Of a stretch of 64,000 nucleotides of DNA, positions 1 through 53,810 are shown piece by piece (positions within the stretch are counted from its first letter, which is position 1; every line of letters starts with the position of its first letter). The DNA lies in NCBI RefSeq assembly GCF_030144855.1, contig NW_026781435.1, positions 1 through 64,000 of the forward strand, in the 5' to 3' direction. Below the pieces are notes generated by a model. The model was not told where the DNA came from, did not search any database, and was given only the letters and a program-made list of their open reading frames with translations. The translations under genes and the position numbers were made by a program. Source of the DNA: Hypanus sabinus (Eukaryota).

Positions 1-891
1 TCCGAGGCCTTGACATCACCATCGCAACACGACCGTTGTACCCATTGATTTTAGACGTAATTTCATAAGGACCATGGAATTTAGCTTGCAAAGGATTCGT
101 CTGCACTGGGAAAAGAACCAGCACCTTATCTCCAGGCTTGAACGTCCAAGCGTCTTTATCGTACCAGGTTTTAATTTTCTCCTGAACCAATTTTCAAATT
201 TCCCTGGCTGAGCTACAAGCTTTATGTAATCTTTCCTTAAATGTTAAAACGTAGTTCCATCCCTTTCCCCTGGCGAGAGCGATTAATCCCAAGAGCCTGT
301 GTTTTGAGCCGTTAAGGAGTAATGGTTCCCGTGGACAGAATGCAAGTCTCCGCTTGCAACGGATTTCTTTGGAGATCTGTCTGCCATCTCGAGAATAATT
401 TAATAACTCCCACTGGCAAAACGGCTCGTCAATCGTCCGTCTCCAGCCGCAATCCCCATCTCATTGCCTCTGGGAAATTAAATAAATTCTGGTACAATTT
501 TGTAGTGGCGGTCCTACCTGTCCAATTGGATGGAGTACATTCTATATGTGGGGAAGATAATTGCAGAGGAAAGGCCGCATGATGTCTATTTATTGATGAC
601 TCCCTCATAGTTTGGACTTTCTCCTTCTCCGATTCGACTCTTTTCCCGCCGCTGTCTGTAAAGCGTGACTGCCTGGGTGTCTTCGGCGTACTCCTGACTC
701 CTCCCACATTCCAAACATCTCTGTGTTTATTGGTTAATTGGTCATTGTAAATTGTCCCATTCGTCGGGTCGCTCGGACCGTGGAGCATTGCGTCATCCAA
801 GGCCCGAACGTTGGAATTGAACTGGAAGTAAGACCTTTGAGAATGAACCTTTCCGGTAGGCTGAGTCATGTGACCGAGTTGGTTTGGACAG
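1..891 (+). other. 3' UTR/flank of an off-window GPR139-like paralog (flank copy F0, part 1)
   Basis: Bases 1-45 and 255-891 align with the sequence downstream of the intact receptor (about 50335-51075) and of the 27808 fragment, e.g. CCTTGACATCACCATCGCAACACGACCGTTG vs CTTTACCATCACCAACGCAATACGACCGTTG. AATAAA at 481-486 matches 50654-50659. Confidence 0.85.
46..254 (-). mobile_element. Isolated ~210-bp gypsy integrase C-terminal fragment without LTRs
   Basis: Translates to ...KTWYDKDAWTFKPGDKVLVLFPVQTNPLQAKFHGPYEI (GPY/F module). About 90% identical by eye over the first 100 bp to about 3037-3255. Confidence 0.85.
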
Positions 892-1731
892 AGTTACGTT
901 CCAGCAACAATGAATATATGAGACAGTGTTATTTATTTTTACACATAAAACATTTATTAAACACTGCTAAAACATACCCAAAATAAACAAACGACTAACT
1001 TAACCGGAAGCCGGCTGCTGTGCGGCAGCTTGAACAGTTCTGAAAGCGATTATGTATAAATATGTTCTTAGAAGAAGTAATGTGAATGTCCAAATGTTTT
1101 ACCCTGTCGCTTCTGAAAGACTTTCTTGTGGTATAACTTCTTTTTTTGCAATACTGCCTATCCCAGCCAAAGTTTGCCTTGCCCGGAGGATTTACGATGA
1201 AGAAACTAAGATGGCTTAAAGGCTCTGACCTTTCCTTGGCGAAACCGTGCGCCCAGTCCTTTCTGCTCTTACAACAGGGACTAACATGTGTACCCATGAC
1301 TAATTCGTTCCGAAGGAGGATCAAACAATATCGAAACTGTTTCACCGTCGAAATCAACTTTCCTCAATCTTTCGTGTTCTCCGAACTTCGATAATTCTTT
1401 ACTCTCCGACTGAAGTTTAACTGGAAGCGATGATCAGAACTGCCCGAACAACGTTGACTTAAGGCAGAATCTAAAACTATGCTTTAAAACATAACTGCGT
1501 CATTACATTGAACACACAGCGGAATGGAGTCACTGGCAAATTCAACCACGAACTGCCCTGCGTCACACGAATGTGTTCCCCCTTTATACCCTGTTGAAAA
1601 AATAGACTATTACATGACCTGTTACTGGCGGGAAAATTACCTCACTCTGCCATCACAAGATCACAACAGTATGCCCAGCAGAGTCTCAATTACATCATGG
1701 TCATGTGACGGACACAAACGGGTACGTAATA
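892..1731 (-). repeat. 3' LTR of the Gmr1-like element
   Basis: Termini AGTTACG...CGTAATA (degenerate TGTTACG...CGTAACA). Aligns with 6147-6987 at roughly 85-90% in alignable parts. Confidence 0.9.
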
Positions 1732-4700
1732 CCTCCCTCTAAAAGAAAATGTCTGTCATGAACAAAATTTTAAAAATTAACTATTTACAGAAGAAAAAAT
1801 AAATAAAATTTACAACGTACACAGTATACATTGTATTATCATACAGCATCTTACAAATTATTACACACTAGGAGCGGTACAAATGTTAAAATATCTCTCC
1901 ATAAAACAATACAGTGCGTTCTCAACATCGATATAGACAATCAGCAATCACAGTATCTCTGCCATTATTAAGCGTTATCAAAATATTGAACTCCTGCTAC
2001 ATTAAGTTTTTATTGCTAAATTGGAGTTTAATGTATTTTCTTAACCGTTTTCCTTAACCAAGCCTGGACTTACAACAGAAATAAGGTAAGACACAGTGGC
2101 ATTTGCAAATTCACTTTCAGCTAAATTAATAGTTGCGTTAGCTTTGGAAAGTCTTTCAAATATTTTTTTCCTCTGCAGTAAAGCGTGCTTCCCAAGTATC
2201 ATTTTCTGTAATTACATTGTCACTATAGGCATCTGTGTCTTTCAATCCCTGAATCACATTTAATCATCCGCTGGAAAGGACCTGGGGCATTCTTCAACCC
2301 AAATGGAAAAACACTATATTCATATAACCCAGATGGAGTTACAAATGCAGAAATATTTCTACCTCTATCCGTTATTGGAACACAACAATCCCATTTTAAT
2401 TAATCAATCTTTGTCAGGAACTTTGCTTTTCCGACTTTATCTACACAATCATTTACTCTCGGATTTGGATATGCATCTGCTTTCGTCACAGCATTCACCT
2501 TCCTGTAATATGTATAAAACCTAATACTGCCGTCTGTTTTAGTCACCATAACACAAGGTGAACCCCAATTCGAGTTAGAAGTTTGAATAATATTACTCTC
2601 TAACATATATCTAATTTCTTTCTCAGCAAGTTCACATTTTTCCATGGTCATCCTGTATGGATGATGTTTTATTGTTTCGGCATCTCCAACATCTACATCA
2701 TGTGAAGCTGCTGTGGTCCTTCTAGGAACGTCTGAAAATAAATGTTTATACTTAAACATTAATTGCTTCATCTGTTGCTTCTACTCTGGCTGTAAATGTC
2801 CTAATTTTCCATCAATATTTTCAGAAGAGTTGAGTTTGCCAACCTGACAGAAACAATGTTACGTTGAAACTGAGTTTCAGATGAATCATCTATTATGTTC
2901 TAGTAAGTCGGACCCATTAGAATTGACCACAACAATCACAGTAGCAGACTGTTTCTCATAATATGACTGTATCGTATTTATATGGAAAAGTTGAGTTGCC
3001 CTTCTACAATCTGTTTTTATCACGGAATCCACCTCATTGATTTTAGAAGTAATTGCATAAGGACCATGAAATGTAGCATGTAAAGGAATCGTCTGCACTG
3101 GGAAAAGAACCAGCACCATATCTCCAGTATTGAACGTCCTCAGCCTAAACTACTTTATTGTACCAGGTTTTCATTTTCTCCTGAACCAATATTAAATTTT
3201 CCCTGGCTAAGCTACAAGATTTATGTAATCTATCCTTAAATATTAAAAAGTACTGCAACAAATTATTGTGTACCTCTTTATTAATCCATTGTTCTTTTAA
3301 TAAAGTTAATGGTTCTCTAACAATATGCGCAAATACCAATTCAAATGGACTGAAACGTAAGGATTCAGTCCGACTGCCTTACTGCAAATAGAAGCAAGCA
3401 TATATCCACATCCCAATCATTTTCATTTTCCACACAATATCTCCTAATCATATTCTTGAGGGTAGAATGAAATCTCTCCAAGGCATCTTTCGATTTGGGA
3501 TGATATGCAGACGAAGTTATTTGCTTAGCTAACAATTTATAAACTATCTGTTGCAACAATCCATACATAAAATTACTGCCTTGATCAGATTGTATTTCCT
3601 TAGGTAACCCAAAATAAGTAAAGGATTTTATAAGAGCCTTTATTCCTGTTTCAATTGTTATATTTCTAAGCGGTACCGCCTCTGGAAACCTGGACGCACT
3701 GCAGATGATAGTCAGCAAGGACTGATAACCTGTTTTTGTTTTTGGTAATGGACGACACAATCATATAATAATTTTAGAAAATGGTTCACCGAATGCTGGA
3801 ATAGGTTGCAATGGAGCTACTAGTGTAACTTGATATGGTTTACCCAGAATTTGGCAAGTCTGACACCTTCAGCAATACGTCACCACGTCTTTTCTCAAAC
3901 CAGGCCAGCAAAAATGTTTTAAAATCTTTTGCTTTTTTCCTCAATCCTTCATGTCCGAATAAGGGCACGCTATGGGCTAAAGTTATCATCTAATTTCGAT
4001 AAACTGCAGGCACAACTACCTAGTGAACAATATTCCATTCATCACTTGCAGGAATTGTAGGCGATCTCCACGTCCTCATCAATACTCCTTTCTGAAAATA
4101 ATATTCTACCGGCACCTTATCCAGTTCTCTATCCGGTAGAGCTCGTTCATTTAATTTAATAATCTCAGGGTCTCTACTCTCCTCTGTTATCATTTCCTTC
4201 TGAGAAAGAGACAAATCTTCATGGTCAATCTTACTCCAAGAATCTTGTTCAAACAATGAGGTAAAAAAGTTTCTGATACATCCTGAACACTCGAATCCTG
4301 AGTTAAACAGTCATGGGTAACAATTTCATTCTGAACATCAATCTATTTAGCCATAGCTCACAGGAACAATCTGTGTAGCATTCAGCAGTTGTTCCTCTCA
4401 CTTTATTGTCAAATGCACTTCTGGAAAAACGTAACGACCTGCCATGTCATTACCTAACAATAAAGAAACATCCTTCACAGTTAAGCTAGGCTGTAGTCCT
4501 ACTTTAACAAGTCCTGTAATAATCCTGACCTTTAAGTTACTTCATGAAAATGTACAGGCATAAGGGCACTCCCAACACCTCGTATGTAATTTCCCTCAGC
4601 GGTGTAAGGCTCCTCGTTACATTTTAACACATTTAACACACTGTCTAACATCAGCGATTAATTAGCTCCAGTATTCCTAACGGTTTTTATTGGTACCGGA

Positions 4701-6146
4701 GAAGATCCTTTTTTCCAGGATACAAGCACTTCAGTTTTAAACTGGTCATACCCCTTCCTAATTTGGTCAGACTCTAACAAAGCTTCATTAGTGTTTATCA
4801 AACCCTCTGGATATACAGGTGTTTCGGTATGTGGCACACACACATCTGGGACTGCTTCCTTCTGCTCTTTCAGCCGGAAACAGTTAGCTATTATTTGACC
4901 TGGTTAATTACAATAATTACAGTGGGACCAAACTGGATTTCCTGCACAGGTTTTCCGTCAATCTTACCTTTCTGACTAACACCTGATTTAATTTCTGGTT
5001 TACCTTGAAGCTCTGTGTAATTTTTCCTTTTAAATGATCTGACCTGAATAAATGTATTCTTATGGATTAAAACATACTCCTCAGCTAATTTAGCACACTC
5101 CTGAAATGTAGTAGTGTCTCTCTCAGTTACGTATATCCTGATTTCATCAGGAATACCCCTTTTAAATTGTTCCATTAAAATCAGCTTTTTCAATTCATTA
5201 TATTACCCATTTACATTTTTGGAGGTAACCCATCTCTCAAAACATGCAACTTTATTGGAGGCTAATTCCACATAAGCATTTTTTCCACTGATTTCTTCGA
5301 ATTTCTGCATCTTTCTCTATATGCTTCTCGGAATAGATCAGATGCCTTCAATATGCACACTTTCACAGTATCATAATCAAGTGCTTGCTAAACAGTTAAA
5401 GCTATATAAACCTGTGGTGCTTTGCACTTAATTACACTCAGTAACAGCACTGATCATTTATTTCCCGGCCACTCTGAAATCAGCGCAACTGTTACAAAAT
5501 GTTGCAAACATTTTTATACTTCTTTTTCACAAAATGGCGGGACAATCTAATTTCCTGACTAACAAAAAACTTGTTTCTAGAACCAGGAGACTGACTCTCA
5601 GTCTTTAATTCCGACATCGCAAGTTCAAATTCCCTCTGTTTATTCTCAGCTTCGAACCAGCGTAATTCCAAATCAGCTTCTAAATGTTTCTTTTTATTTT
5701 CAGCTTCTAATCGACTGAGATCCACGTTAGCTTCCAAATTCCTTCTGTTTTACTTCAGCTTCTATGTTACGCTTTCCTATTGCTGCTTGTTTCAGGTGTA
5801 ATTGAATCGCTGCTTTACTCACAGGAAACTTATCTAAAATCGATACATCGAAAACATGTGAAACAACGAAGTGTTGCGCTATTTCTCTCTGAATGACAGA
5901 CATTGTTGTATCTTTCGTGATACCTGTAAGTTCCAAGATACTAGCAGTTTCAGATACATCACACGTTTTCGCCTTCGCTAATAACTCCAGATCTGGCGAT
6001 GCCCGGAATTCGTCAATGCTCATTATTGCCGAATACGACTCAAAAGCCAATCAAACAAAATAATCGGGTCTAACACTTTCCAAAACACCGTTCGAAAATT
6101 AAATAAGCATTTAAGCTCAAAATAGTTTATCCCACAAGCCCCCAAT

Positions 6147-6987
6147 TTCTACGTTCCAGCAGCAATTAATCTATTGAGACCTCTTTTTTAAAAAAAATTC
6201 CAGAAGTAAAAAATCGACGAACATAACCGGAAGTCGGCTGCTGTGCGGCAGCTTGAACAGTTCTGAAAGCGATAAAGCGAAAACAGATCTTAAAGCGATT
6301 GTGAATAAATATATTCTTAGAAGAAGTAATACGAAAGTCCAAATGTTTTACTCAGTCGCTTCGGAGAGACTTTCTTGTGGTATAAATTCTTTTATTGCGT
6401 TACTGCCAATCCCAGCCAAAGTATGCCTTACCCGGAGGACTTGCGATGAAGAAAATAAGATGGTTTAAAGGCACTGACCTTTCTTTGGCGAAACCCTGCA
6501 CCCAGTCATTTCTGCTCTTACAACAGGGACTAGTATGGTTACAGATGACTAATTCTTTCCGAAGGAGGATCAAACAATGTCGAAACTATTTCACCGACAA
6601 AGTCAACATTCCTCAATCTTTCGGGTTCTCCGCACTTAGATAATTCTTTTCTCTCCGACTGAAGTTTAACTGGCAGTAATTTTCTGAATTGCCGGATCAA
6701 CCTTTGACATAAGGCAGAAAGTAAAATTCCACGTTAAAGCAAATCTGCGTCAGCTCATCGAATTCGCAACGGTACGGAGTCACTGGCAAATTCAACCACG
6801 AACTGCCGCGCGTCGCAGTGCGGCTTTCCCCTTTTATACACTGTTGAGAAAAAACCTATCCCATGACCTCAAAGTGGCGGGGAAATTACGTCACTCCACC
6901 ATCACCAGGCCATTACATCATGCCCAGCAGAGCCTCAATGACAGCATAATCATGTGGCAGGCACAATCTACCCACCGGTTAGTAAAA
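6147..6987 (-). repeat. 5' LTR of the Gmr1-like element
   Basis: Partner of 892-1731, immediately adjacent to the PBS at 6129-6144. Confidence 0.9.
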
Positions 6988-7880
6988 ATAGCATGGCTTC
7001 AAGTAAAGTACAGAGGGCAGTGATGGAGGACATCCATTCTGCATGTGAGAATTGTTGGAAATGTCCTTGCGTTTGACTTGGTCGAAAATGGGAGTGACTC
7101 ATAGATACTCTTGCAGACGACACAGACGTGATTGAGTTGTAGATGTTGAGGGAGCCTGTTAAAAGTCCAGTTGGAAATATAGCCGAGGAAATGAAAATTT
7201 TGTCATTCCAATAGGGCAGATTGTGCTCGAATGATACTGAAATAATAGAACAGCATTATTATTTTTAAATATAGAAGAAATGGAAAGAACAGAAGACGTT
7301 TTATGCTGAGGTACTACAAGAATGTTCAGCTTGGTAGGAACATCTGTTCGTGGACTAGTAATTCAGTAACTCTGCTGCTGGATTCACTAATCTGCAAGAA
7401 TAAAAACGTAGATTTGTATTCCGCCAGCAAGTGGAAGTTTGTGAGCAGAGAATTTATGCTGTAACCCGCGAATCGCATTTTATACACAAAGCATAAAAAA
7501 CATTCCATAGTTAATGTCCGAAAGTGAGTCCTTCCCTGGAACAGTGATATATGTAACTGAATCGGATGTCAGCAATTCGGCTAAGTAATAATCTTACAGA
7601 TGACACAGAAACGTTGACACGTTTACAAGCATGACATTTACTCAGGGCGTGGTGGGTCCATGCGATGCGGTTCCTGGAGTGGTGGTAGAGGCATAAGGAT
7701 AAGTGGCCTTTAAAATTAGCCAAGACAGACTTTTTTTCTATGAGGAAAATGGAAGGATATGCTCATTTTACAAGCAGAAAATATCAGTTAGCCATTATGG
7801 AAACATAGAAAATCTACAGCACAATACAGGAAATTCGGACGGCAAAGCTGTACAGAGCATCGTGTTACGGATAAGCTCCA
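6988..7880 (+). other. 3' flank copy F0, part 2 (old CR1-derived sequence shared by the receptor units)
   Basis: Colinear with about 51075-51790 and, apart from the solo LTR, with 32814-35010. Contains a decayed CR1 RT motif (CTTGCAGACGACACA, ADDT). Confidence 0.8.
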
Positions 7881-10370
7881 TGTGCCTATCCAGGAGACGC
7901 TTAAAAAGCCCTTTGCTCATCCGCCTTCACCACCGTCACCGGCAGCCCCTTCCACACACTCACCAATCTCGCGTGAAAAACGTAACCTGACAACTCCGCT
8001 GCACCTCCTTCCAGCAGCCTAAAGCTGTGCCCTCTTGTGATAGCCATTTCAAACCTAGTATAAAGCCTTTGACTATCCAGATGATCAATGCATCTCATCA
8101 CCTTATACAGCTCTATAAGGTCACCACTCACCCCCCTTCTCTCCAAGGACAAAAGATCAATCTCATAAGGCATGCTCCCCAATCTAGGCAACATACTTGT
8201 GAATCTGCTCTGCACACTTTCTTTGGTTTCCAGATCCATCCTGTAGAGAGGCCTCCAGATCTGAGTACTCCAACTGGGGTGTGAATAGGATACAAAATAG
8301 CTACAACATTACCTCTCAGTACTTAAGCACAATCCCACGTTTGTTGAAGGAGAATGCACTGTATGCCTTGTGAACCACAGGGTCAACCTACGCAGCCGCT
8401 TTGAGCTTCCTGGCCTTGGACCCCAAAACACTACTGCAAATTGACACTGCATAGTCTTACCAGTAATAGTATATTTTGCCATCATATTTGACCTAACAAA
8501 ATGAACCACTTCACATTTACGTACGTTGAACTACATCTGTCACTTCAATGCACAGTTTTGCATTCTATCAATGTCCCACTGTAACATCTGACAGCCCTGC
8601 ACACTACCCACAACACCTCAAACCATTGTGTTATCAGCAAATTCACAAACCATTCCATCCAGCTCCCCATCCAGGGCAATTATAAAAACCGGGAAGAATA
8701 AAGGTCCCAGCACCGATCACTGCGACACAACCATTGGTCATCGAATCCATACAGAATACGACCGGTCTACAACCACTGTTTGCCTTCGGTGTGCAAGACC
8801 GCTGTGGATAACAAAGTAATGCCCCTTGGATCCCATGCCTCCTTTCTTTTTCAATTAGGCTTATATGGGGCACCTAATTAAATGCCTTGATGAAATCCAG
8901 ATACACTGGATTCGTTCTTCGACTGCTTGTTGATTGACCTCCTCAAAAAATGCAATCAGGCTTGGCAGGGAAGACCAACCCTCGACAAAATGATGCTGAC
9001 TGATCCTAATCGTATCATAACTCTCCAAATGATCAAAAATCCTGCCTGTTAAGATCTTCTCCTTCATCTTACCAACCACTGAAGTAAGAGTCACTGTCAA
9101 ACGCCACAAAAATATACCCTGAACTTTTGCTAAATTTCATACATAATCTGTGTTAATCTGTTCCTAATTTAAGCTTCCAATTTCCTCCCTGATAGCCTCA
9201 CAATTCCGCTTACTCCACTCAAAAGCTTTTCTAAATTGTCTAATTCTATCTCTCTACAATAAGTCTGTCTAAGGAAGATAGAACTATGATCACTACCTTC
9301 AACATTCTCTCCCACTGAGTGATCTGACACCCGACCATTTTCATTTCTTCATTTCCCAATACAACACAAAGTACATTCACCAGAAATGTAGGCTTATCTA
9401 CATATTTTGAAAAGGGAGCTTCATGAACATACCTAGCAAACTCCACCTCATCTAAACCCATGCTCAGGGGTGATAACAATCGATATTTGGGAATTTAACG
9501 TCTCCCATTACGACAACTCTGCTGTTATTACAACTTTCCAGAATTTGTCCCCATCTGCGCTTCGATATCCCTGTTACGGCTTACAAAGACACCCAGTAAA
9601 TATATTGACCCTTCCTGTTCCTAACCTCCACCACAAAGTCCCCGTAGACAATTCCTCCATGCTGTCCAACTGTTTTGCTGCCGTGACACACTCTCTGTTA
9701 AAACGTGCCACGCCCCCTTTTCTTTTGCCTCACTCCCTATCCGTGAGCCATCCAAGTCCCTGCAATAGCCAGCACATTGAAGCTAGAAGTACTGATCCAC
9801 GCTTAAAACTCATCCGCTTTGTTCACAATACTCATTGCGTGAGAATAGACACATCTCTAACCTCCGGTCTCAGCGCGTCCCTTCTCGATCAGACACTCAC
9901 TCACACACGCACATGCCTGTCCTCACTCAAGCGCTGCCTACAATTTTTTTTCTATTTGTGAATTTTTATTTTCTATTTTTTTCTATTTTCACGTCCTATT
10001 CTTCAGTTCGGTTCCTATCATCCAACAATTCTATTGAGACTCTCTCCATTAGCTTAGCAAACCTCCCCAGCAGGATATTGGTCCCCTTGGGATACAAATG
10101 CAACGCTTTCTATTTGTACAGGTCACACCTGCCTCAAAAGAGGTCCCAAAGATCCAGAAATCTGAATCCATGTTCGCTGCTCCAATCCTTCAGCCACGCA
10201 TTTATCCTCCATCCCATTCTATTCCTGTCCCGTTGTGACAGTCAATAATCCGGAGATTACCAGCTTTGCGGTCCAGCTTCTCAACAGCCTCCCTGACTCC
10301 AAGTAGTCTTTTTCAGGACCTTTTTCATTGGTATCCATATGCACCACGACCTCTAGCTGTTCCCCCTCTC
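7880..10370 (-). mobile_element. Decayed CR1 LINE with internal deletions, shared between paralogous flanks
   Basis: RT, endonuclease and ORF1 esterase remnants (SLERRGVSGDLIELYK, LTLTSVVGK). Starts at the same flank position as the CR1 copies at about 35010 and 51790. Confidence 0.8.
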
Positions 10371-40412: not shown

Positions 40413-40932
40413 GGACGGGGGGGTGATCGTCAGTGTATATACGTTTCTATATACCACGAGATTAGTTTCCTTGCTAGGATACTCAATAAATCTGAATAGA
40501 ATAATAACCATGACAGAATCGATGACAGACGGCAACCACAGAGGCGTTCAGCCGGAAAGAGTAAGAAGACCAATCTCTTCTGAGCTCTCTCTTTAACAAG
40601 ACGCTTTCGGATTGAAATGGCGCTCTCTGGAAGTTTTTCCTGGCTTCATGACAGATATATTATTCCTTCTTAACCACATTCTCTTGCCCTCTACCCGTAA
40701 CTATTGAAACATTCTGTAATCAATGGATGGTCAACCTCTTTGCTATAACATAAGGACCATCCAACCTCTGCTTTCAACATAACGACATGTAGACTGATTT
40801 CAATCGATTTCAGCGGTTATATTCCAACGGTATAACCCAGCATTTACATTTAGATTTATTTTGTGTGAACAATATCTTTAGAAAACTTTATTTCCTGGCT
40901 GAGTGGCCTGCAAAATAGAGAAGGCGGGGGGG

Positions 40933-41099
40933 NNNNNNNNNNNNNNNNNNNNNNNNNNNNNNNNNNNNNNNNNNNNNNNNNNNNNNNNNNNNNNNNNNNN
41001 NNNNNNNNNNNNNNNNNNNNNNNNNNNNNNNNNNNNNNNNNNNNNNNNNNNNNNNNNNNNNNNNNNNNNNNNNNNNNNNNNNNNNNNNNNNNNNNNNNN
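40933..41099. other. Assembly gap (N run); other gaps at 55383-55512, 61649-61782 and 62506-62674
   Basis: N runs in the sequence. Confidence 0.99.
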
Positions 41100-44000
41100 T
41101 CACTCTGTCTCGACACTGTTGAACCGATTGCCAATTACCAGGAAGAAGTATCTGCATCGTGGTAATAAGTCACTGATGAGCCACTGGTTATGAACTAAAA
41201 GGATGGTTTAAGTACTGGGAAGTGAAAGGGTTCCTGACTAATTTTCCTGTCCTTTCAGGACTGAAAGAAGTAAGGGTGCAGCTCAGCGGGACGTTGCTGA
41301 ATTCTTGGCCTGTTCTTTTTTTTCTTTTAAACGGGGACTTCATTGTTGATTTGAATGACTTTTATTGGCGTTATACATATGTACAATGAAACCCTGCTTG
41401 GATTCCTGTCAGACAATGAAACAAAGCGTTAGATTAAAAAGAACAGAGTGATACAAAAACAGTATCACTGTTATAGATTAGCGGAAATAGATTAGCGGAA
41501 AATAATTTCCAGCAGCACCAGGATATCACAGTAATTCACATGCTGAATTCAGATTTAGGAGCAGTTGTGACATCACAAGCATCAGGTTCATGAACAGGAA
41601 TGGCGAGCTTCACTCACCCCTACTGTGAAACAACCTGAACCAAACACCCTTATTGCTAAATGACTTGGAGCTTGGAGTATTCAAGAGATGTTTAATGTTT
41701 TGGGATCTGTGATGACTTGGAGGATAGTGGTTGTAAATATTACTTTTGGCACAATATTAACCCTGCTCATGTTCCATCCTCTGTCACTTTCCTCTTTTAA
41801 TTCAGCATATGTTGGCATATACCAAGCATTAATATGTTATCTCAGTTCGTAATGGCTTTATCTATTGAATAATTTGCTGTTCTTTGTCTACCCTGTGTTG
41901 TTTTTACCCGGACGGTTGTGATGTATTCTCCTGTTTGTAATCAGTGATCGGTCGTCAGAAAATTTGTCAGAATCTGATTCTTGTATTTAAAGTAAGTTGC
42001 TGTGTCCTTTCTGTTTCTCATCATCTGGTGAAACCTCATGTCCGGACACGACCAATCACGCTCATTTCTCATATGCTCGGAACATTCAGACTATCTTGTT
42101 GGTGCTTAATATCATGTCCTTCCGGAGATGCCCATGAACATTGCTGCGAAAATCACTTTCTGATTGGACTCCGGTGCTCAGTGCAGTTCCGTAGCAATCG
42201 GTGTTGGGACCGCTTCTTATCGCGTTTTGCGTCATAATTCGGTGAACGATTTATTTTTTTGTTTATTAGCTTTATGGCAGGGGGTAGGGATCATGCGAAA
42301 TTAGATGGAAGGTCAGATAGAGTTGATGATGTACGCTTCTTGCAGAAGGATTAACACAGGCTGCACAGTCAAGAAATAATTGGCAGCAGGAATGTAAAGC
42401 AGGGAAGTGCCCAGTCTTAGATGCTGGCACAGGGAATATAGGCCTGGATTATTTCAAAAATGGGAACAAAAAACAGCTGAATTGAAAAATCGGAGTTGCC
42501 TAGCCAAAGGACTATCTGCAGAGAGAGTCTGTGGTGAGGAAGACAGATACGTATCCCAATCTATTTTCAGAGGACTGGTATATAAATACAACTCCTTCGC
42601 CATATAATAAACTGTATACTCTCTGCAGAGGCCGAGATTTTTTAACAATGAGGAGAACATTGAAACAAGCAGGGGTGTCGAGACTTTTGTGAAGATTCTA
42701 TACAGGAAAATTTGCAGAATGCTGAGGAAGCCAAATGCAATGGTAATGTAACACTCGGCTCTCTCAGCCGACGTTCATCTTGGGGAAACTGCATTAGTCC
42801 ATACCAAAATGGGTACTCATGTTTGCGTAGAAGCTGTGTAGTGCACTCGGCTGCAAGTCCACAACGTAAAATATCAGAGACTAAACAATGATTACACATA
42901 ATAACCCTTATTTGGTGGTGTGGTTAGTAGAAACCAATAAATCAAAGGATCACGCCTCCCACGTTCGCCGATAAATGACTTCCGAACCTCCGACAATCAC
43001 CGAACTATCGAATTCCGATATCCAACGTCCTGGGATCGCCGAACGCTCCCGCACTCGTCCTTCCTCTTCACTCGCCTCGCCGAAAAGACCGCGAACTCTC
43101 TCTCAGTTCCCGCCAGGCAAGTTAGCATAACAGGTCCCTCATTGGTTAGTTCCCCGTTATCTGCAGTTATAAACCAAGCATCGCAGCTACATAAACCATT
43201 ATCTCATCAGATAATATTACAGAGAAGACATTTGATTACAACACTACAGGGAAGCCATTTTATTAGCCTTAACAGTTGACATTACAGTCAATATTACTGA
43301 GAACCATAGATTAGCATCCATTTCCAAATGACGGGGATATAAAAGCAGAGTCTGAGAACCTGTCGATCTGTATATTCTTCCAGGTTGTGGCCTCATAAAC
43401 ACGTAGCACGGGCAGCAAATGCTGGAGGTCCTGTCTTTTAATTTCACTCTTAACTCCCGGAACTGGTAGTGCAGTAAATCCTCCCTGAACGTACCCATGT
43501 CATTGGTACCTCAATGGCCCACGATGTTGAGCTGTTAACTCTGCCAGGTAAGAATGCTGAGGACTCGATCCGAGTTGTCCCTGATGTTGTCGCCGACAGA
43601 ACCACCTGTCTGCACCACTAACGAATGCCCTATCACCACAGCGTGACTTTCACACTTCCGCGTCCCCCCCCAACCACATGTACACAGAGACCACTCAAAA
43701 CCCACCGCTCTTCTCAGTCACCGAGGCAAAATAACTGCTTGAGAGTAGACTACAGTGACAGAACTCTGTTAGTCATTTTTTCCGCGCCCCCCAAACTTCC
43801 AAATGTGGCAGATGGCCACGGGGGAGCTCTGCTCTGGCCCCTTCAGCCGTTTCTCATTCCATACCGTTAGACAGTCTCTTGTGCCCCGAGCCCTGGGTGT
43901 AAATCCCTCTCTGTATGTCTTGTCCATCACCACTTCAGACTCCCGAGTGACCTGTAGCTTATCCAGTTCCAGATCCATCTCCGTAACGCGAACGGTCAGA

Positions 44001-44737
44001 AGTTGTAGCCAAACGTAGCTAAGACAGCAGTCGTCGTCAGGGTGACTGGAGTTCTCTATGCCTTCTCAGATCCCGCAAGAGGAGCATTCAACTATCCTGC
44101 CGGCTTCTCTGTTATCCCATATGATCAGATATTTAAAAAGATAAGGAAAAGAAAAACTCTTCGCCAAGTGCGTTTCTTTTCTTTGTCTATTTGACTGAAA
44201 CCTCCCTGAACTGACGCCTCGGCGAGCAGAAACCTGAAGATCACCTGCTTGATGGCTACTGCATTTGCCCCTGCTTTCCTCTTGATGATCAGTGACAAAC
44301 GACGCCTGGTCGCTGGCCAACGCTGTTTTCACTGTAAGGATCACCTGTCGCTTTTTATACCCGTGCTGAGTGAAGTCCTCTCCTCCTAAATCACCCGACG
44401 TCCAGAGCTGTCGCTCGACAGAACTCATTTTTTCTGAAAATAATTATTTAGGAATTATCTAAAGCGACACCATTTTCAAACTACCTATGCAATTATATAT
44501 TTATATCCGTTTATATCATCATTATTGTTTGTTTTATTTTTTTATTTTCTTCGTGTAACTTCATTACCAGACTTGTTGTGTTACAGTGTCTAACTGCGTG
44601 TCAATAATTTTCTCAAATTTGTGTCCATTTACAGAAACGGCACATATCCGTGGACAGCGGACTGCTGGGATTATTAGACACACTTCCAATCTGCTTTCGT
44701 ATCGCTTCTCTGTCGGTCTGCAAATAAAGCGTTAACT

Positions 44738-44834
44738 GCAGCTGTCATTCCGTAGAACCTAATTAAGGGAGTGTCACTGGAGATTGTCGACGTCACAGCG
44801 GAGGTGTGGCTACTGGTTGCCTGGTCTATAAATA
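44738..44834 (+). promoter_or_regulatory. Putative proximal promoter of the intact receptor
   Basis: CAGCTGTCA, TAATTAA (44760-44766), GATTGTCGACGTCAC (44782-44796) and TATAAATA (44827-44834). Conserved with 17301-17399. Confidence 0.65.
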
Positions 44835-44960
44835 TGTCCGGTATCCCTCACGACGACAGTTTCAGTGAGAGCCGCCAGCTTGCGGTATCAGAGATAAGCG
44901 ACTGTAGACAGAGAGAAGACAGAGGCTGGATCGGGAACAGGAGTCTGGACTATTCCAGCA

Positions 44961-45132
44961 ATGGATCAGAATCTTCAAAACACATCGCGCAGTGATGCGG
45001 CAATTGCTAAGAATATTTTCTGGACGAGTTCATATATGATTAATGTGCTGATGTGGGATTATCGAATCGCTGCTGCAATTGTGACATTCCAAGACGTTTA
45101 CTACCCTGTACTCGCCATTGTAGCTCTTCCTG
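44961..45132 (+). CDS. GPR139-like: Intact GPR139-like receptor, exon 1
   Basis: MDQNLQNTSRS...DVYYPVLAIVALP plus G (172 nt, phase 1), then GTAAGT. N-glycosylation sequon NTS. Confidence 0.9.
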
Positions 45133-45830
45133 GTAAGTGTCTCGTCTCTTCCTCAAGATGTTGTTGAAAAATATATGACAGCTTCTCTTCCATCCCTGTC
45201 CTCTAACGGTTCGCTAATTTTATATCAGGTCTTTCCAAACGGTTTCGCTTCAGCAAACATGGTCTGAGTGTATTTGACACGGTACCCCATGCAAGGCATA
45301 TTGAGCTAATAAGGAGGCATGTTATCCAAAGAGACTTTGCTTTGTGGCTCCAGAACTCGCTTCCCACTGAAGACAAAGAGATGATGTAGACGTGTCATAT
45401 TCTGCAAGGAGGTCGGTGGCCAGTAGTGTGCCTCAGTTATCATTGTGCTAAACTTACTCTTCCTGCTTTTTACAAAAAGGCCTGGATGTGGAAGTGGAGC
45501 GTTGGTTCAGTAAATGTGCTGGTGACACAGAGGTTGGAGCTATTGTGGATAGTGTGGAAGGCTGTCAGAGATTACAGCGAGACATTGATAAGATGCAATA
45601 CTGGGAGAGAAGTGGCAGATAGAGTTCAACGCAGATTAGTCCAAAGTGGCTCACTTTGGTAGATCAAACATGATGGCCGAATATAGTATTAGTAGTTAAG
45701 ACTGTTGGCAGTGTGGAGGATCAGAGGGTTTTTTTGGGTCCGATTCCATAGGGCGCTCAAAACAGCTGCGCCGGTCGATTTTGAGAGTGAGAAGGAATAT
45801 GGTGTATTGGCACCCATTAATAGTTGAATT

Positions 45831-46488
45831 TGTTATGAAGGATGAACAACTCCTATGGTTAGAAGGGTACACAATTGCCCATATATTTTTCCCTTCCCTA
45901 GGAGAATTACAACCCGTTACTGCTGCAGTGCTTCTAATGAGAGAGAAAGAGATGGAACAAAAATATACTGGGACTGTAACATTTGCTTCAGATAAGGGAG
46001 AGATAACACCGGGAGAGAGAGACTTGCTGTTCCACCATATTTTGACTCCTGAAAGACTTATGGCCCCGGAGAGGGCTGTTTACTTGGTACCATTCTGTAC
46101 ATTAAAATTCCACAGTGGACAGCCGGAGTGGGCCGGTTTGATGGACTAAGCCATTCAAAACTGATTGACACCTGAGACCCCGTGAGTACGGATAAAAGTG
46201 AGGACTGGGGAGACACCCCTCAGACACACCAGGAGACGCACCAGGATACAGACTAGTGAGCACTGCTTAAGTGTTGGAACCCACAAGAAAAGTGTTGGGC
46301 ATCGGAGATCGAACGAAGGATCGGTCAATTTTAACTCACAGTGCTTACAGCGAGGCAAGTGGGGGCTTGTCTGTGTGTCCACCCTTGCCTGGGTGACGAG
46401 TCCACCGTAGAAGAACGGTCTAGCTAAAGGCGAAAGGGGTCGACGGATCAAGAACGTAAAGGAAGGTTTGACTGACTGTCACTTTTTG

Positions 46489-46568
<80 letters not shown>

Positions 46569-46800
46569 AATTACAACACATCGACCAACAACCAACAACT
46601 ACCTCGGCCTGTATGAACAGAACTGAACTTTATATTCACTTATGAAAATTCATTATCCCCTCGACAACGATAGAGCTTGTTTATTGTATATTATTATTAT
46701 TACCCACACTTTTAGGTTTAGTATTGCCAACGTGTATTATCTTTATATTTGTATTGTGGATATTGATTTGTATATTTTACTAATAAACACTATTTTGAAA
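45831..46800 (+). mobile_element. 3'-truncated LTR inserted in the intronic CR1; related to the 54633-59086 LTR family; contains (CT)n at 46493-46565
   Basis: Starts TGTTATG. About 46260-46430 matches the reverse complement of about 58540-58720, and the host CR1 resumes at about 46805. Confidence 0.75.
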
Positions 46801-46804
46801 ATAG

Positions 46805-48520
46805 TGAATTTAGGAGCCGAGAGTTAATGTTGCAGCGATATAGGACAATGATTTGACCCTACTTGGAGTACTCGACTCAATTCTGGTCGCCTCACTACAG
46901 GAAGGATGTGGAAACCATAGTAAAGGTGCAGAAGAGATTGGCGAAGATGTTGACTGGATGGATTGGGGAACATGCCTTATGAAATCAGGTTGAGTGAACA
47001 CGGCCTGTTCTCCGCGAAGAGACGAAGGATGAGCAGTGACCTGATAGAGGTGTATCAGATGATGAGAAACATTGATCGTGTGGATAGTCAGAGGTTTTCT
47101 CCAAGTGCTGAAATGGTTCCAATAAGAGGACATAAGTTTAACGTGCTGGGATGCAGGTACAGAGGAGATGTCATGGGGAATTCGTTTATGCTGAGATTCG
47201 TGAGTGTGTTGAATGTTCTGCTGGCAACAGTGGTGGAGGCGGATTCGAGAGGGTCTTTTAAGAGACTTTTGGAGAGTTACTTGGAGGGTGGGAAAATAGA
47301 GGGCTGTGGGTAGGCCTAGTCAATCCTAAGATTGGGACATGTTTGGCACAACATTCTGCGCCGAAGGGACTGAATTGTGCTTTTGATTTTCTATGTTTCT
47401 AGATCAGCCATAATCACTGTCATTGCCTGATCTTGCCAGTCTGAACTGATGGACTATTCCTGCTCCTATTGCTAATGAACATGCCACTCCCCAATCTGCC
47501 TCTTTCCAACCCATCTCAATCTCCAATCCCTCTCCCACTAGACAATCTCAAATCTATATCTCACTCACCATTTTGAGTTTCCAATCCGTCTGACTCTCAA
47601 CAGACAAATTCTAACTGGCAAATGGAGTGTAACCCAGATAGGTGTGAGGCACATGGAGTTTAACTCAGATGAGTTAATTTTGTGGTTCATTTTGCTAGGT
47701 CAACTATGAAGGCGGAATATAGTATTAATGGTAAGACTCTTGGCAGTGTGGAGGATCAGAGGGATCTTGGAGTATGAGTGCATAGGACTCTCAAAGCAGC
47801 TGCACACGTTGACTAGTGGTTAAGGAGACGGACGGTGCATTGGCTTTCATCGATCCTGGAATTGAGTTCAGGAGCAGAGAGCTAATGTTGCAGCTATATG
47901 GGATCCTGGTCAGATCCCACGTGTAGTACTGTGCTCAGTTCTGGTCGACTCACTGCAGGAAGGACGTGGAAGCCACAGAAAGGGTGCAGAGATGATTAAC
48001 AAGGATGTTGCCGGGATTGGGGATCATGCCTTATGAAATCAGGTTGAGTGAACACTGCCTATTCTCCTCGAAGCAACAAAAGGTGAGCGGTGACCCGAGG
48101 CATTGATCGTCTGGATAGTCAGAGGATTTTGCCAAGTGCTGAAATGGTTGCCATAAGAGGACACAGGTTTAACGTGCTGGGATGCAGGTACAGAGGAGAT
48201 GTCATGAGGAATTCTTTTATGCAGAGAGTTGTGAGTGTATTGAATGTTCTGCCGGCAACAGTGGTGGTGGCGGATACGAGAGGGTCTTTTAGGAGACTCT
48301 TGGAGAGTTACATGGAGCTTTCAAAAATATAGGGCTGTCGGTAAGCCTGTCATTCCTAAGGTTGGGACATGTTGGACACAACGTTACGGGCCAAAGGTCC
48401 TGCATTGTGCTGTTGGTTTTTTATGTTTCTATGTTTCTAGATCCGCCATGATTACTTTCGTTGACAAATCACGCCAATCCGAACAGATGACTACACCTGC
48501 TCCTATTGCTAATGGTCTTA
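46805..48520 (+). repeat. Tandemly duplicated CR1 3' end plus flank within the intron
   Basis: About 46810-47480 vs 47880-48520 are highly similar, including non-LINE sequence past the tail (CCTGCTCCTATTGCTAATG in both). Confidence 0.8.
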
Positions 48521-49192
48521 CGTTCTCATTCTCTCTCGTGTTTACCGTTGAGCGGACATGAATTTATATCACTTTAATACATGGCATATTAATCAGTTTA
48601 TTATTTTCTTAACAGCTCCCTGTGTCCACTCCTTATTCTGACTTCAAAGATCAGAATATATTCCAGGTATCCACTAATATCCCTGATTAGCCCACAGGGT
48701 ACGACAGCTGAATTCAGCAATTCGAGCACCGAGCCGTCTCCATTATAGCTGATTTATCATCCCCCTGAACCACATTCTGGCGACCACTCCCCGTGTCCAT
48801 TGACACCCCGACGAATCATGAACCTATCACTCTCCGCTGCCAACAAATTGGCAACCATAGCAGTCTGTGGCGTTAAATTCCACACATTTAGCCGCCTTCG
48901 AGTAACGAAATTGTTCCCCATCTCTGTTCCAACGAGATTGGTTTACTTTTGTGAAGACTTGTTCTCAGAAGATTCCAATCCACGTCCACAATATTTCGGA
49001 CGTTCAAAATTCGATAGGTTTCCCTGAGAATCCCCTCAATATTTTGAACTTCAGCAGGTACATTATACTCCGAAATAGTAATGGCTCCCATATTCATCTC
49101 TGTTCTTGGAAGTGTTGTCGATTAAAACAATAGTTTATAGGGAAAGTTTTCATCAAAATATGTGTTAATGACCTTTATTTCTCTCCACACAG

Positions 49193-50118
49193 TAAACGTG
49201 GTGACATTAGTCATCCTGTCGCGGGGAAAGTGCGGTCTCTCCAAAGGCGTCACAAGGTACCTGGTTGCCATGGTAGCTGCGGATCAGTTGGTCGTTTTCT
49301 TCGATCTGGTTTTGAGCAAGATTCCGATGACTTTCATTCCAGACGAGTTTTTTCTCTGGTCCCGTCGTGTTCCTGTGTGTAATATCCACGCCGTCGTGCT
49401 CTACGCCGCCACGGACTGTTCTGTCTGGTTCACCGTCACTTTCACCTTTGATCGATTTGTCGCCATTTGTTTTCCGAAGCTGAAACAAAAATACTGCACC
49501 GGGAGAGCGGCGGCTCTGGTTCTGGGGACAGTGACTGTGCTGAGCTGCTTAAAAAACATTTTTTGGTACTTTTTTCTCGATGGGACATATTCGATATTAA
49601 GAACGTCCGTGTTGTGTTATAGCAGTAAACGCTTATTTTCCCCACCGAAGCTCGCAACATTTCTGATGATTCATTTCGTCTTGACCCCAATATTACCCTT
49701 TATCCTGATTCTGCTGCTCAACAGTTTAACCATCAGGCACGTCTTAGTGGCCAGCCGAGCCCGGAGGAGACTCCGTGGTCTGCGCGATGGCGAGACGCCC
49801 GCCGACCCGGAGATGAAGAACCGCAGGCAATCCCTCCTGTTACTACTGGTGATGTCAGGGAATTTCATCCTGCTATGGGCGCTGCTGACGGTGTCTTCCG
49901 TATGGGAGAGTCTCAGTGATTACGTTCCCTTGATTCCCCCTAAATCTCTTCGGGAGCTTGGCTACATGCTGCAAACGCTGAGCTGCTGCACCAACACCGC
50001 CCTTTACGCTGTGGTCCAGGCGAGGTTCAGGGTTCAGCTGCAGGAGACGGTGACAATTCCCTTCCGTCTATTGACAAATTTCACTCGGCGTTGTCAGGAG
50101 AGCATTAATCCTCAGTGA
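49193..50118 (+). CDS. GPR139-like: Intact GPR139-like receptor, exon 2 (spliced product 365 aa, 7TM class A)
   Basis: Pyrimidine tract and CACACAG acceptor at 49191-49192. G+TA restores Val in frame, and 172+926=1098 nt. Motifs: YLVAMVAAD (TM2), TDCSVWFTVTFTFDRFVAIC (TM3), LTPILPF (TM5), NTALY...RFR (TM7/helix 8). Family assignment is from remembered GPR139/142 motifs, not a search. Confidence 0.92.
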
Positions 50119-50653
50119 CGCCCGAAAATATCCTATTCTGTCAGTGGCATGTGCAGTTCTATTGGCGCTGTGGACGTCCCTGAATATCTCCCGCCCTCCA
50201 CCCCTCGATGCACCAACAGGATTTGAGAGTATCCCCTTTCTGCCTCCATTCTGACACTTCCAGTTTACTTACTTCACGAGTTCCCTGAAATGTCCCCCTC
50301 AGTACCATCAAGTGGGTTGTTCTAACCTTATTTGCACGCGAAGCTTTACCATCACCAACGCAATACGACCGTTGTGCCTTGCTTGTGTTCCATGCGGATC
50401 CCAGCCTGTGTATGCCCGATGTCGCTCCATCTCTTTCCTCTGTCGATGACTATTGGTTCTGAGAGCCACTGCCTTTGAGCCGTTCAGGTAGCCTGGTTAC
50501 CGTGGACAGCCTGCAAGTCTCCTCTTATGGAACGGAGTACTTTAGAGTTCTGTGTGCCACCTCGAGAATAATTTACTTACTTGCACTCGTAAAACGACTC
50601 ATCCAATCGTCCATCCCTAGCAACAATTCCCATCGGAAAGCCTCTGGAATTCA

Positions 50654-50659
50654 AATAAA
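50654..50659 (+). terminator. Putative polyadenylation signal of the intact receptor
   Basis: AATAAA about 540 nt after the stop. The position is conserved as AATAAA or ATTAAA at 481-486, 28371-28376 and 31460-31465 (minus strand). Confidence 0.6.
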
Positions 50660-51789
50660 TTCTTGGCCAGTTTGTGTTGCGGTGGTCCTATCTGTCGAAT
50701 TGGATTGAGTGCATTCGGTAGGTGGGGAAGCTGATTGCTGAGGAAAGGGCAAATGATGTCTATTTATTGATCGTTTCCCTCGTAGCTTGGTCTTTCTCCT
50801 TCTCTGGTTGATTGTAAGCCGTTCGACTCATTTTCCGCCGCTGTCGTAAAGTGTGACCACCTGTGTGTCCTCGTCCTTCTCCTGGTTCCTCCCACAGAGC
50901 AGAGACCTATGTATTGACAGGTCAATCGGTCATTGGAAATTGTTCCATTAGCAGGATTGCTTGGTCCGTGAAGCATTGCGCCAGCCAAGGCCTAACGTTG
51001 GAATTAAACTGGAAGTAATTATTTTGAAAATGACCCGTTCCGGTAGGCTGAGACATGGGACTGAGTGGCATTTTATAACATGGCTTCAAATAGAATACAG
51101 AGGACAGTGGTGGAGAACAGCCATTCTGCATGTGACAATTGTTGGAAACGTTCTGGCATTTGACTTGTATGAAAATGGGCTTGTCTCATAATACTCTTGC
51201 AGACGACACAAATATGATGGAATTGTGGATGTCGAAGGAGCCTGCTTAAAGCCCAGTTGGAAATGCGGCCGAAAAAAAATGACAACTCTGTCATAGTAAT
51301 AGGACAGTTCAGTCTCGAACGATAGAGAAATACGAGCATAGGAAATATCTTTAGCAATATGGAGAAAATGGAGAGAACAAAAGACGGTTTATGATGAGGT
51401 ATTATAAGAATGTTTGGCTTCGTCAAAACATCTGCGCCTGGACAGGTAATTCAGTAACTCTGTTGTTCAATTCATCAATCTGTAAAAATAGAAATAAAAA
51501 AAACAAATAGATTTGTATGTCGCCAGCCGGTGGAAGATTGTGATGCAGAGATTTTATGTGGTAACCCAGGAATCGCATTTTAATCACAACGCATAAAGGC
51601 AAGTCCATAATTAATGACCGACAGTGAGACCTTCCCCGGGTTACCGAGACAGACATATGCCCGTGAGGAAAATGGAAGGATATGCTCATTTTACAAGCTG
51701 AAAAGATTAGTTAGCCATCTGCAACACAATACAGGAACTTCGGCCCACAATGCTGTTCCGAGAATTGACTTACTTTATAAATTATCTCC

Positions 51790-53810
51790 TGTTACCGGTT
51801 GGCCTCTTCTTTTTAAGCTCCATATGCTTCTCCAGGAGTCTCTTAAAAGACCCTATCGTACCCGCCTTCACAACCGTCACCGGCAGCCCATTCAACGCAC
51901 TCGCCAATCTTCGCGTATAAAACGTAACCTGACACCTCCTCTGTACCTCCTTCCAGCAGCTTCAAGCAGTACCCTCTCATGACAGCCATTTCAACCCTGG
52001 GATAAAGCCTCTGACTATCCAGATGGTCAATGCCTATCATCTTATACAACACTATAAGGTCACAGCTAATCCTCCGTCGCTCCAAGGAGAACAGGCCTAT
52101 TCAGCTATGGCACACTCCCCAATCCAGATAGCATATTTGTAAATCTGTTCTACACCCTTTATATGATTTCCGCATCCTTCCTCTAAAGGGGCAACCAGAA
52201 ATTAGCTAGATTCTGCATTAATATTTGACCTACCAAAATTAACCACTCCACATTTTTATGGGTTGAAATCTATCTGCCACTTTTCTGCCCAGTTCTGTCA
52301 GCCCTCCACACTATCCACAACAACTCCAAACATAGAGCCATCTCCAAATTTAATAAGTCTTCGCTGCACTTCCCCATTCAGGGCATTTTATAAAAATCAC
52401 GAAGAGTAAGAGTCCCATAACAGACGCTGAGACACAACACTGGTTACCAACCAGCGTGCAGAATCTGGCCCGTCTACAACGACTATTTACTTTCTGCGGG
52501 GAAGCCAGCTCTGGATCCACAAAGCCACTGTCCCTTTGGATCACAAGCCTCTTACTTTCTCAAAAACGCTTGCATGGTGCACCGTATTATAAGCCTTGCT
52601 GAAATACATATATACTATATCTACAGCCCTTCCTACATCTATAGTCACATCCGTCAAACATTCAATCAGACTCTTAAGGCATGACCTGCCCTTTACAAAG
52701 TCATGCTGACTATTTCTTTTCATACTATATCTCTCCAAATGTCCATAAGTCCTGCGTCGCAGGACCTTCTCCATCAACGTACCAACCACAAAGTTAAGAC
52801 TCACTAGTCTATAATTTCCTGGGCTATCTCTACTCCCTTTCCTGAATAAAGGAACAACATTCGCAAACCGCCAGTCCTCCGGAACTTCTCCCGTCGCAGC
52901 TGATGAAGCAAAGAACATCGGCAGCGACGCAGCTATCTGCTCCCTCACCTCCCACAGTTTCCTGGGTTACATCTCATCCGGTCCCAGCGACATAACCAGG
53001 TTGATGCTTTCCAGAATCTCCAGAACATCCTCTTTCTTAATATCTACATGCTCAAGTTTTTCAGTTGGCTGCAAGTCATCACTACAAACACCCAGATCCT
53101 TTTCCATAGCGAATGCTGAAGAAAAGTTTTCAGTTCTTACCACGATTATTTCTTCCTGCTCCAAACACACTATCCCACTGTCACACGTGATAGGTCCTAT
53201 TCTTTCCCGTCTTATCCTCTTGCTCTTCACATGCTTGCAGAGTGCCTTGGGGTTTTCCTTCATTCTGCACGCCAAGGTCCTCACGTGGCCCCATCTGGGT
53301 CTCCTAATTAAGCTCCTTCCTGTCAGACATAATCCTCTCGATCTCCAACATCACCGAGCTCATTGAAACACTTGTAAAGCTTTCTTTTCCACCTGACTAG
53401 ATTTATTACGGCTTTTGTATATCAGAATTCCTGTACCCTACCGTAACTTCCCTGTCTCTTTGGAATGTACCTATTCACAACTCCAGACAAATAGACCATG
53501 ATTTTTTTCCACATTTATCCTGAATATTGTCTTGAGAACATCTGTTCCCAATTTATGCTTACAATTTCCTCCCAGATAGCCTCACTATTCCAGTCACCAC
53601 AATTAAACGATTTACTAACTTGTCTGCTTCTCTCTCTCTTCAATGCTATTTTAAAGGAGATGAATTATGATCACGATCTACAAAATACGCTACCACTGAG
53701 AGATCTTACACCCGACACCCTGGTTCATTTCCCAATTCCATCTCAAGTACGGTCTCCCCACTTGTAGGCTTATCTACATATTTTGTCACGAAACCTTCAT
53801 GAACACACCT
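51790..53810 (-). mobile_element. Decayed CR1 (shared flank insertion)
   Basis: GNYRLVSLNFVVGTL and YFSKAYNTV remnants. Same start site as the copies at 7880 and 35010. Confidence 0.85.

Follow-up and report, generated by a model that had tools for sequence, protein, structure and literature searches.

GPR139 is a G protein-coupled receptor (GPCR) of class A; it is expressed in the habenula and brain, is encoded by two coding exons and has GPR142 as its paralogue. Mutagenesis places its ligand site at F109, H187, W241, N271 and R244, with E108 nearby (PMC5430874), and reviews describe the receptor as highly conserved across vertebrates (PMC12208981). The canonical olfactory repertoire of sharks is small, the catshark having only 2 olfactory receptor (OR), 6 OR-like, 3 ORA, 3 TAAR and 2 TARL genes (PMC11979771), so that a GPR139-related family in these fishes deserves attention. 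Here we analyze a stretch of 64,000 nt from the stingray Hypanus sabinus (contig NW_026781435.1, positions 1 to 64,000 of the forward strand; hereafter the window), which very probably covers the end of a tandem array of large units, each with one two-exon gene for an orphan class A GPCR, belonging to a family that expanded in elasmobranchs and has GPR139 as its nearest characterised relative. Our literature search, which included a GPR139 review and the catshark sensory genome paper, found no description of this receptor expansion.

The array retains one intact gene, for which reading the DNA directly gives two exons of 172 and 926 nt that together make up 365 codons and a stop. Exon 1 (44961-45132, + strand) encodes the N-terminus and most of the first transmembrane helix (TM1) and ends in CCTG followed by GTAAGT (G/GTAAGT), while exon 2 (49193-50118, + strand) covers 308 codons from the end of TM1 to the C-terminus. 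Between them lies a repeat-rich phase 1 intron of 4.06 kb (45133-49192, + strand) that contains an internal duplication (46805-47477 and 47863-48514). The bases directly 5' of exon 2 are tttatttctctccacacag; the acceptor reads ...ctctccacacag, after which the exon starts with TA in phase 1. The gene had been proposed, at 365 amino acids, in a preliminary description made from the letters of the window, and it stands, with both exons open and both donor and acceptor matching the consensus. Exon 2, which was the query throughout (exon 1 was studied via its translation and tblastn), matches the Pfam profile 7tm_1 (PF00001) with 69 bits and an E-value of 5.9e-19 against a gathering cut-off of 30.5, over profile positions 2-260 of 260. 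Exon 1 is missing from several public protein models (P0001 to P0003), which begin at an in-frame Met within the intron.

A word search with the exon 2 protein returned 1366 hits, the best 120 of which are all elasmobranch proteins annotated "probable G-protein coupled receptor 139", with 54-79% identity across the full length of exon 2. These best 120 come from Heptranchias, Heterodontus, Pristiophorus, Mobula, Hypanus, Leucoraja, Rhinoraja and Narcine, dozens of them from single species, and the named sources of relatives include Mobula hypostoma, M. birostris, Hypanus sabinus, Heptranchias perlo and Heterodontus francisci. The nearest is a Mobula protein 79% identical to exon 2, the exact protein not being among the matches listed, and a feature search of the ESM Atlas gave only "probable GPR139" and generic 7tm_1 clusters. 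The suggestion of a lineage-expanded receptor family, made earlier with the proviso that few paralogues genome-wide would count against it, was thus checked by protein search, and the outcome favours expansion.

The pattern of conservation in this family is uneven, as seen in an alignment of 121 sequences consisting of this exon 2 and its 120 closest hits. Mean column entropy is 0.37-0.78 in the intracellular loops (ICL1-3), 0.35-0.96 in the helices and 1.7-2.3 in the extracellular loops (ECL1-3), the outer and inner halves of the receptor differing with p = 2e-10; nearly all of the most variable sites lie in ECL2, ECL3, ECL1 and the C-terminal tail, and the deep-pocket positions are conserved family-wide. 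The micro-switches comprise DRF (R in 100% of the 121 sequences), W229 (100%) and N268...Y272 (100%), the last in the form NTALY without proline; these are variant forms common to the whole family. In a 32-member alignment the TM3-ECL2 pair C63 and C142 is invariant, and all 47 columns invariant in these members are kept in the intact gene. Pairwise dN/dS (the ratio of nonsynonymous to synonymous divergence) within the subfamily is 0.45-0.90 overall. Outside the loops it is 0.27-0.53 in 6 of the 7 pairs and 0.73 in the remaining one, that of the Hypanus copies L002 and L004b, and within the loops it is 0.6-1.4. Loop dS is also raised, at 0.39-0.75 versus 0.2-0.28 elsewhere, so the loop dN/dS gives no demonstration of diversifying selection. 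Our reading is of a fixed signalling face and core with loops that would evolve at about the neutral rate, positive selection being possible.

The surroundings of the gene were compared with two separate Hypanus sabinus contigs (L002, which holds a complete unit, and L004) and two Mobula loci (L001 and L003); coordinates called intact-unit below are positions in the unit holding the intact gene. The window contains three whole units, namely a left-edge flank (copy 0), unit 1 and the intact unit, plus a 1.4-kb fragment of a fourth lineage. A unit measures 16.5 kb on the Hypanus relative's locus and 22-28 kb in the window after transposon insertions. When the long open reading frame (ORF) over the intact exon 2 (49162-50118) was run by tblastn against the window, three exon 2 copies were recovered (intact, inverted and a 3' half), and full-length relatives place two exon 1 copies, from 44961 and from 17520. 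The preliminary description was therefore correct in listing a second exon 1 (17520-17664, open, with a matching donor), two further exon 2 copies, one decayed and inverted (32393-31587) and one a 3' half (27325-27808), and two copies of an upstream block of about 2 kb at 70-75% identity. Its count of at least five units has to be lowered to three whole units and one or two fragments. All five of the 3' flank pieces that it listed are indeed homologous to 50119-53841, at 68-80% identity in a self-comparison of the window, but piece 27809-28430 corresponds to intact-unit 50119-50719 and piece 32814-37500 to 51118-53792; as these do not overlap, no flank position is present more than four times. 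Two of its flank limits also shift, the first piece being detectable only from about 251 rather than 1 and the flank from 32814 ending at about 37741 rather than 37500. Its central proposal of a tandem array evolving by birth and death agrees with what we find, units decaying through transposon insertion, deletion and inversion while one gene stays alive: the window holds one intact and at least two broken genes, and the Mobula and Hypanus loci are mixed too.

At the left edge, copy 0 consists of a 3' flank (251-10369, + strand) whose own exon 2 is predicted to lie about 40-50 bp left of the window edge. Its blocks 256-879, 6988-7539, 7741-8259, 8459-9095 and 9100-9465 are collinear with intact-unit 50426-53841 at 68-77% identity, and also with Hypanus L002 13621-19648. 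The flank is split by a long terminal repeat (LTR) retroelement at 880-6987, with LTRs at 969-1717 and 6192-6966 and an integrase ORF at 3365-3760 (- strand; rve match, E 1.6e-7); since the two LTRs are only 80% alike, the age of the insertion comes close to that of the unit duplications. LTR-like pieces occur in a Mobula intron as well (L001 8100-8872).

Unit 1 begins with the upstream block (15538-17519, + strand; 70-75% identity to 42745-44960), which also matches L002 from 9531 and L003 6928-7626; the duplicated block is about 2.2 kb, the full match of 15538-17952 to 42745-45418 again showing 70-75% identity. Exon 1 (17520-17664, + strand) is open for 48 codons plus 1 nt, nine codons shorter than exon 1 of the intact gene, and has the identical donor, GTAAGT. 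The intron up to the inversion breakpoint discussed below (17665-27324, + strand) is enlarged by two long interspersed nuclear element (LINE) copies, 18507-22203 and 23693-27001, both on the - strand and, being 79% alike, of one family; we take them to be CR1-like from the C-terminal motif LEYCVQFW, present in ORFs 13243-13713 and 24145-24513. The pieces of the intron at 17976-18498, 23526-23693 and 27147-27324 match intact-unit 47779-48827 and L002 10324-12000. A 90%-identical copy of the 3' part of this intronic LINE lies on the Hypanus contig (L002 4-869), from which it follows that this LINE family was active at a later time than that of the unit duplications.

The decayed exon 2 of unit 1 lies in the inverted remainder of the unit (28908-32813, - strand), which comprises flank (28908-31586), exon 2 (31587-32393) and an intron remnant (32394-32813). 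This exon has a stop at residue 89, a 47-nt deletion and a 1-nt insertion, and its homology ends about 18 codons short of the stop codon; by tblastn it extends over 32424-31574 in three frames with one stop. The Hypanus contig joins what the window separates: L002 11814-12000 equals 27147-27324 (+ strand) and L002 12001-13273 equals 32813-31587 (- strand, 78% identity), while L002 13879-15166 equals the inverted flank at 30186-28908. In a four-way breakpoint alignment the two pieces join with an overlap of at most 7 nt. This continuity across both pieces implies that the exon 1 of unit 1 and this decayed exon 2 once belonged to a single gene, parted by an inversion of 27325-32813 that is near base-precise in the alignment, with junctions at 27324/27325 and 32813/32814 and one break in the intron about 400 bp upstream of unit 1 exon 2.

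At the left junction stands the half exon 2 of the other lineage (27325-27808, + strand; detected from 27325/27342), with its last 154 codons open and a stop at 27806-27808; tblastn aligns 27344-27805 to residues 166-318 at 70% identity, the sole lesion being one 3-nt insertion. It is followed by flank (27809-28714, + strand) that matches intact-unit 50119-50719 up to 28436 and Mobula L001 2595-2808 over 28501-28714. That this piece is the missing half of the inverted exon was considered and ruled out, the two being 71% identical and having different partners in the tree. To the right of the inversion, a flank copy without an exon 2 of its own (32814-37741, + strand) starts abruptly at the breakpoint and matches intact-unit 51118-53792 and L002 14316-20326. 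It may be either unit 1's own flank, duplicated at the break, or a fifth unit: its piece 32814-33682 is 80% alike by alignment (74.5% by BLAST) to 28908-29761 over about 850 bp, and in the tree of this piece a sister relation has supports of only 27-30. A 1.36-kb segment (33119-34478) is present in this flank and in L002, and partly in the inverted flank, and is missing from the intact unit and copy 0; the deletion of 1.1-1.4 kb that these two have in common marks both as one subtype.

The intact unit extends from 37746 to 53841. It starts with a distal upstream region (37746-40155, + strand) that matches Hypanus L002 21236-22426 and 4702-6056 and Mobula L003 3649-4659, continues with an upstream block (42745-44960, + strand) collinear with Mobula L003 5491-7778, and ends in a 3' flank (50119-53841, + strand) that includes an old reverse transcriptase (RT) fragment (52541-52948, - strand). 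No receptor-family homology was found in the window rightward of 53841, so the array ends there. The window has four runs of N, of which only 40933-41099 falls within the array, in non-coding DNA between collinear anchors and outside all copies. It lies 3.9 kb upstream of the intact ATG, and the duplicated upstream block starts 1.65 kb to its right; the only ORFs crossing it are composed of X. Its two sides are collinear with the Mobula unit (L003 3649-4659 equals 37758-38766, and L003 5491-6370 equals 41851-42745), the spacing between the anchors being 832 bp in Mobula versus 3.1 kb in the window. The shorter Mobula spacing indicates that the gap probably sits in a lineage-specific insertion; among the compared Hypanus and Mobula loci, no match was found for the 780 bp left or the 750 bp right of it. 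The link of the dead units on the left to the intact gene on the right would accordingly be one of collinearity (order and orientation) and scaffold.

Several points weigh against an array of this kind with a living gene at its end. One inversion gives no simple ancestor: undoing it leaves an inverted half exon 2 beside a duplicated flank piece, so that a single simple inversion is rejected as the full history. The conservation analysis rests on the 120 hits closest to this gene, with TM boundaries set by eye using the GPR139 alignment as a guide, and the loop pattern would fit equally well with a relaxation of constraint, with noise in the alignment or with gene conversion acting on the conserved parts. 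Overall dN/dS against close relatives is 0.45-0.70, high for a GPCR, and with every other copy in the window dead the intact gene could itself be heading for loss. Among the sequencing runs listed, none recorded as RNA held exon 2, the best runs containing 0.26-0.31 of its words, and read contigs over 44700-50600 (5,901 letters, 4 runs) contained no 45132>49193 joint; these short contigs, 90-95% alike, extend over the intron and the acceptor too, which makes them DNA of relatives or paralogues. Logan contigs with family member P0072 (L006 to L008) still carry the polypyrimidine tract and the upstream AG and hence represent DNA and no transcript. Over the intron of the intact gene (45488-48245), contig depth in four runs reaches up to about 650,000 in summed word depth, an extreme value that assigns the intronic repeats to very high-copy families in related genomes.

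Some of these points would suit a pseudogene that has yet to break, or a relic without expression at the array's dying edge, in which case the window would hold no functional receptor. The broken state of every other copy, the elevated dN/dS and the RNA search without a transcript match all lean that way, as does the fact that the nearest relative, Hypanus L004a at 89.5% identity, is itself a pseudogene. Set against this are the 365 codons open over two exons with consensus donor and acceptor, the retention of all 47 family-invariant columns and the low non-loop dN/dS in 6 of the 7 pairs, and we regard the relic as unlikely, preferring a gene that still encodes a receptor.

Much less can be said for the idea that the repeated flanks reflect the same transposons having inserted independently beside receptor fragments that are unrelated. 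Fragments of the flank LINE and of other repeats do occur elsewhere in the window (45279-45569, 46881-47275 and 59319-59787), and the read depth over the intronic repeats is very high. However, transposon fragments recur in an identical order in the flanks and the upstream block, with 68-81% identity, and the flank copies contain, collinearly, both an RT-bearing LINE fragment (intact-unit 52541-52948; RVT_1, E 0.0015) and a second dispersed repeat (51644-52199), each of which is also found, collinear, in the Hypanus unit L002. At least six blocks keep their order in the flanks and recur in L002 and, partly, in the Mobula loci; counting exons, upstream block and intron pieces, at least six blocks hold order and orientation across three window copies and the Hypanus contig, and the intact unit and copy 0 have a deletion in common. 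Such collinearity refutes independent insertion, which we consider very improbable, and means that whole units were copied after those insertions, as the preliminary description had argued from the common old insertions.

Nor is the gene at all likely to be the orthologue of GPR139 in this species, which would make it a single-copy receptor of the brain for aromatic amino acids, accompanied by local junk copies. Relatives are publicly annotated as "probable GPR139", and against all solved structures in the PDB only GPR139 falls below E 1e-5 (4.3e-9, 39.6 bits, about 24% identity by hand count); with the 32-member family profile, GPR139 scores 61 bits (9.1e-16) and the next receptor 39.7 bits (2.9e-9). 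The hydrophobic contacts F109, H187 and W241 are kept as Y71, H161 and W229, and family-wide these positions hold Y/F in 94%, H in 93% and W in 100%. The polar contacts E108, R244 and N271 (PMC5430874), by comparison, are L70, L232 and Y258 here, the three positions being L in 93%, F/L/Y and F/Y across the family. About 24% identity is also low for a receptor that reviews call highly conserved in vertebrates (PMC12208981), and single elasmobranch species have dozens of paralogues among the best 120 hits. The low identity, the many paralogues and the lost polar contacts together refute orthology. Judged from these alignments, GPR139 is the nearest characterised relative of a family not orthologous to it, so that the earlier label "GPR139-like" holds as to the nearest solved relative and fails as to the ligand site, where three of six contact residues are lost.

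The copies are old. Exon 2 identity between pairs in the window is 71-81%, and other parts of the unit are 68-80% identical. In the exon 2 tree the intact copy groups with Hypanus L004a and the inverted copy with Hypanus L002 (82.7% identity), each with a bootstrap of 100, and the half exon 2 is 81-82.5% identical to Mobula copies versus 71% to the inverted copy. At the DNA level the intact exon 2 is 84.6-85.5% identical to Mobula copies, and intron and flank pieces are 68-76% identical to the Mobula loci. As paralogues the window copies are of long standing, and for two of the three copies of exon 2 (intact and inverted) a closer relative lies on another contig; the duplications date from about the time of the stingray-manta split or from before it. 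That the copies are assembly or haplotype duplicates, as the four assembly gaps in a region hard to assemble might suggest, is barely conceivable and is refuted by their divergence, since copies 68-81% identical, with many indels, private transposon insertions and, for two exon 2 copies, those closer relatives elsewhere, together with the Mobula alignments, cannot be such artefacts, and the preliminary description had reasoned likewise. Intact genes likewise stand beside broken ones in the Mobula and Hypanus loci (e.g. L001 817-2159 and L004 3662-4581); Mobula L001a has a 426-bp insertion in exon 2 and 18 stops in a single-frame reading, and Hypanus L004a has 14 stops in such a reading.

Right of the array, about 12 kb from the last receptor unit, ORF 62150-62491 (- strand), beside the gap 62506-62674, encodes an immunoglobulin-superfamily V domain (...WYRQ...DTAVYFCARD). 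ORF 56838-57218 (- strand) weakly matches the SCAN domain (E 4.2e-5, which does not reach the gathering score) and is probably a gag-derived retroelement fragment; near it lies a repeat pair, 54635-55377 and 58163-58901, 85% alike.

Taken together, the locus points to a history in which units were duplicated, presumably by unequal crossing-over, after which the unit 1 intron gained two LINEs and the inversion of 27325-32813 then split the gene, the parted exon 2 decaying. A half exon 2 of another lineage lies at the left inversion junction, and the last unit has stayed intact. As a clean example of array decay, the locus combines LINE and LTR insertions with an inversion that parts exon 1 from exon 2, but interest attaches to the family rather than to the locus, which is one intact gene amid wreckage. 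The receptor encoded here may well be a working one that would couple to a family-wide G protein through a near-invariant intracellular face (DRF, NxxxY and ICL1-3), with its ligand bound in a conserved deep aromatic pocket (Y3.33, H5.43 and W6.48) and its specificity presumably set by the highly variable extracellular loops.

What such receptors detect can be stated with less confidence. Our best guess, held at somewhat short of even confidence, is that the family forms a repertoire of sensors, directed at many chemicals or peptides from outside or inside the body, and does not act in neuromodulation as GPR139 does. The narrower proposal of a true sensory repertoire in olfactory or other chemosensory cells, in which an aromatic core combined with loop specificity reads many related ligands such as peptides or amino-acid derivatives, is tentative and, in our view, somewhat doubtful. 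If it were true, the family would supply the large set of chemoreceptors that seems to be missing in sharks and rays. Tandem copies numbering dozens to hundreds, variable outer loops and a signalling face that stays fixed make this class A family in any event a candidate for an unrecognised sensing system, one that sits in public annotation under the misleading name "probable GPR139". The window itself counsels caution, in that the deep pocket is conserved and positive selection is only possible.

Among described systems, human GPR139 (PDB 7VUG and others) belongs to the same class A and is the best solved-structure match by a clear margin, and in both receptors the TM7 motif lacks proline (NTALY here, NFFLY in GPR139). 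The ray receptor differs in having no proline after W6.48, and at GPR139's three polar contacts it has L, L and Y, the last two being F in most members of its family. Copy number differs as well: GPR139 is one conserved gene, and the elasmobranch family has dozens or more paralogues in each genome, arranged in tandem arrays that include pseudogenes. The elasmobranch "probable GPR139" proteins are of the same family, and the two-exon layout and multi-kb unit, with homologous intron and flanks, are found in the Mobula and Hypanus loci also. The expansions of the OR, TAAR, V1R/ORA and MRGPR type likewise take the form of tandem arrays with many pseudogenes, lineage-specific expansion and high overall dN/dS, and these chemoreceptor families likewise combine a conserved signalling face with a variable outer face. 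ORs, however, vary inside TM3, TM5 and TM6, whereas the present family varies in its extracellular loops, has a conserved pocket deep in the transmembrane part and carries an intron in its coding region.

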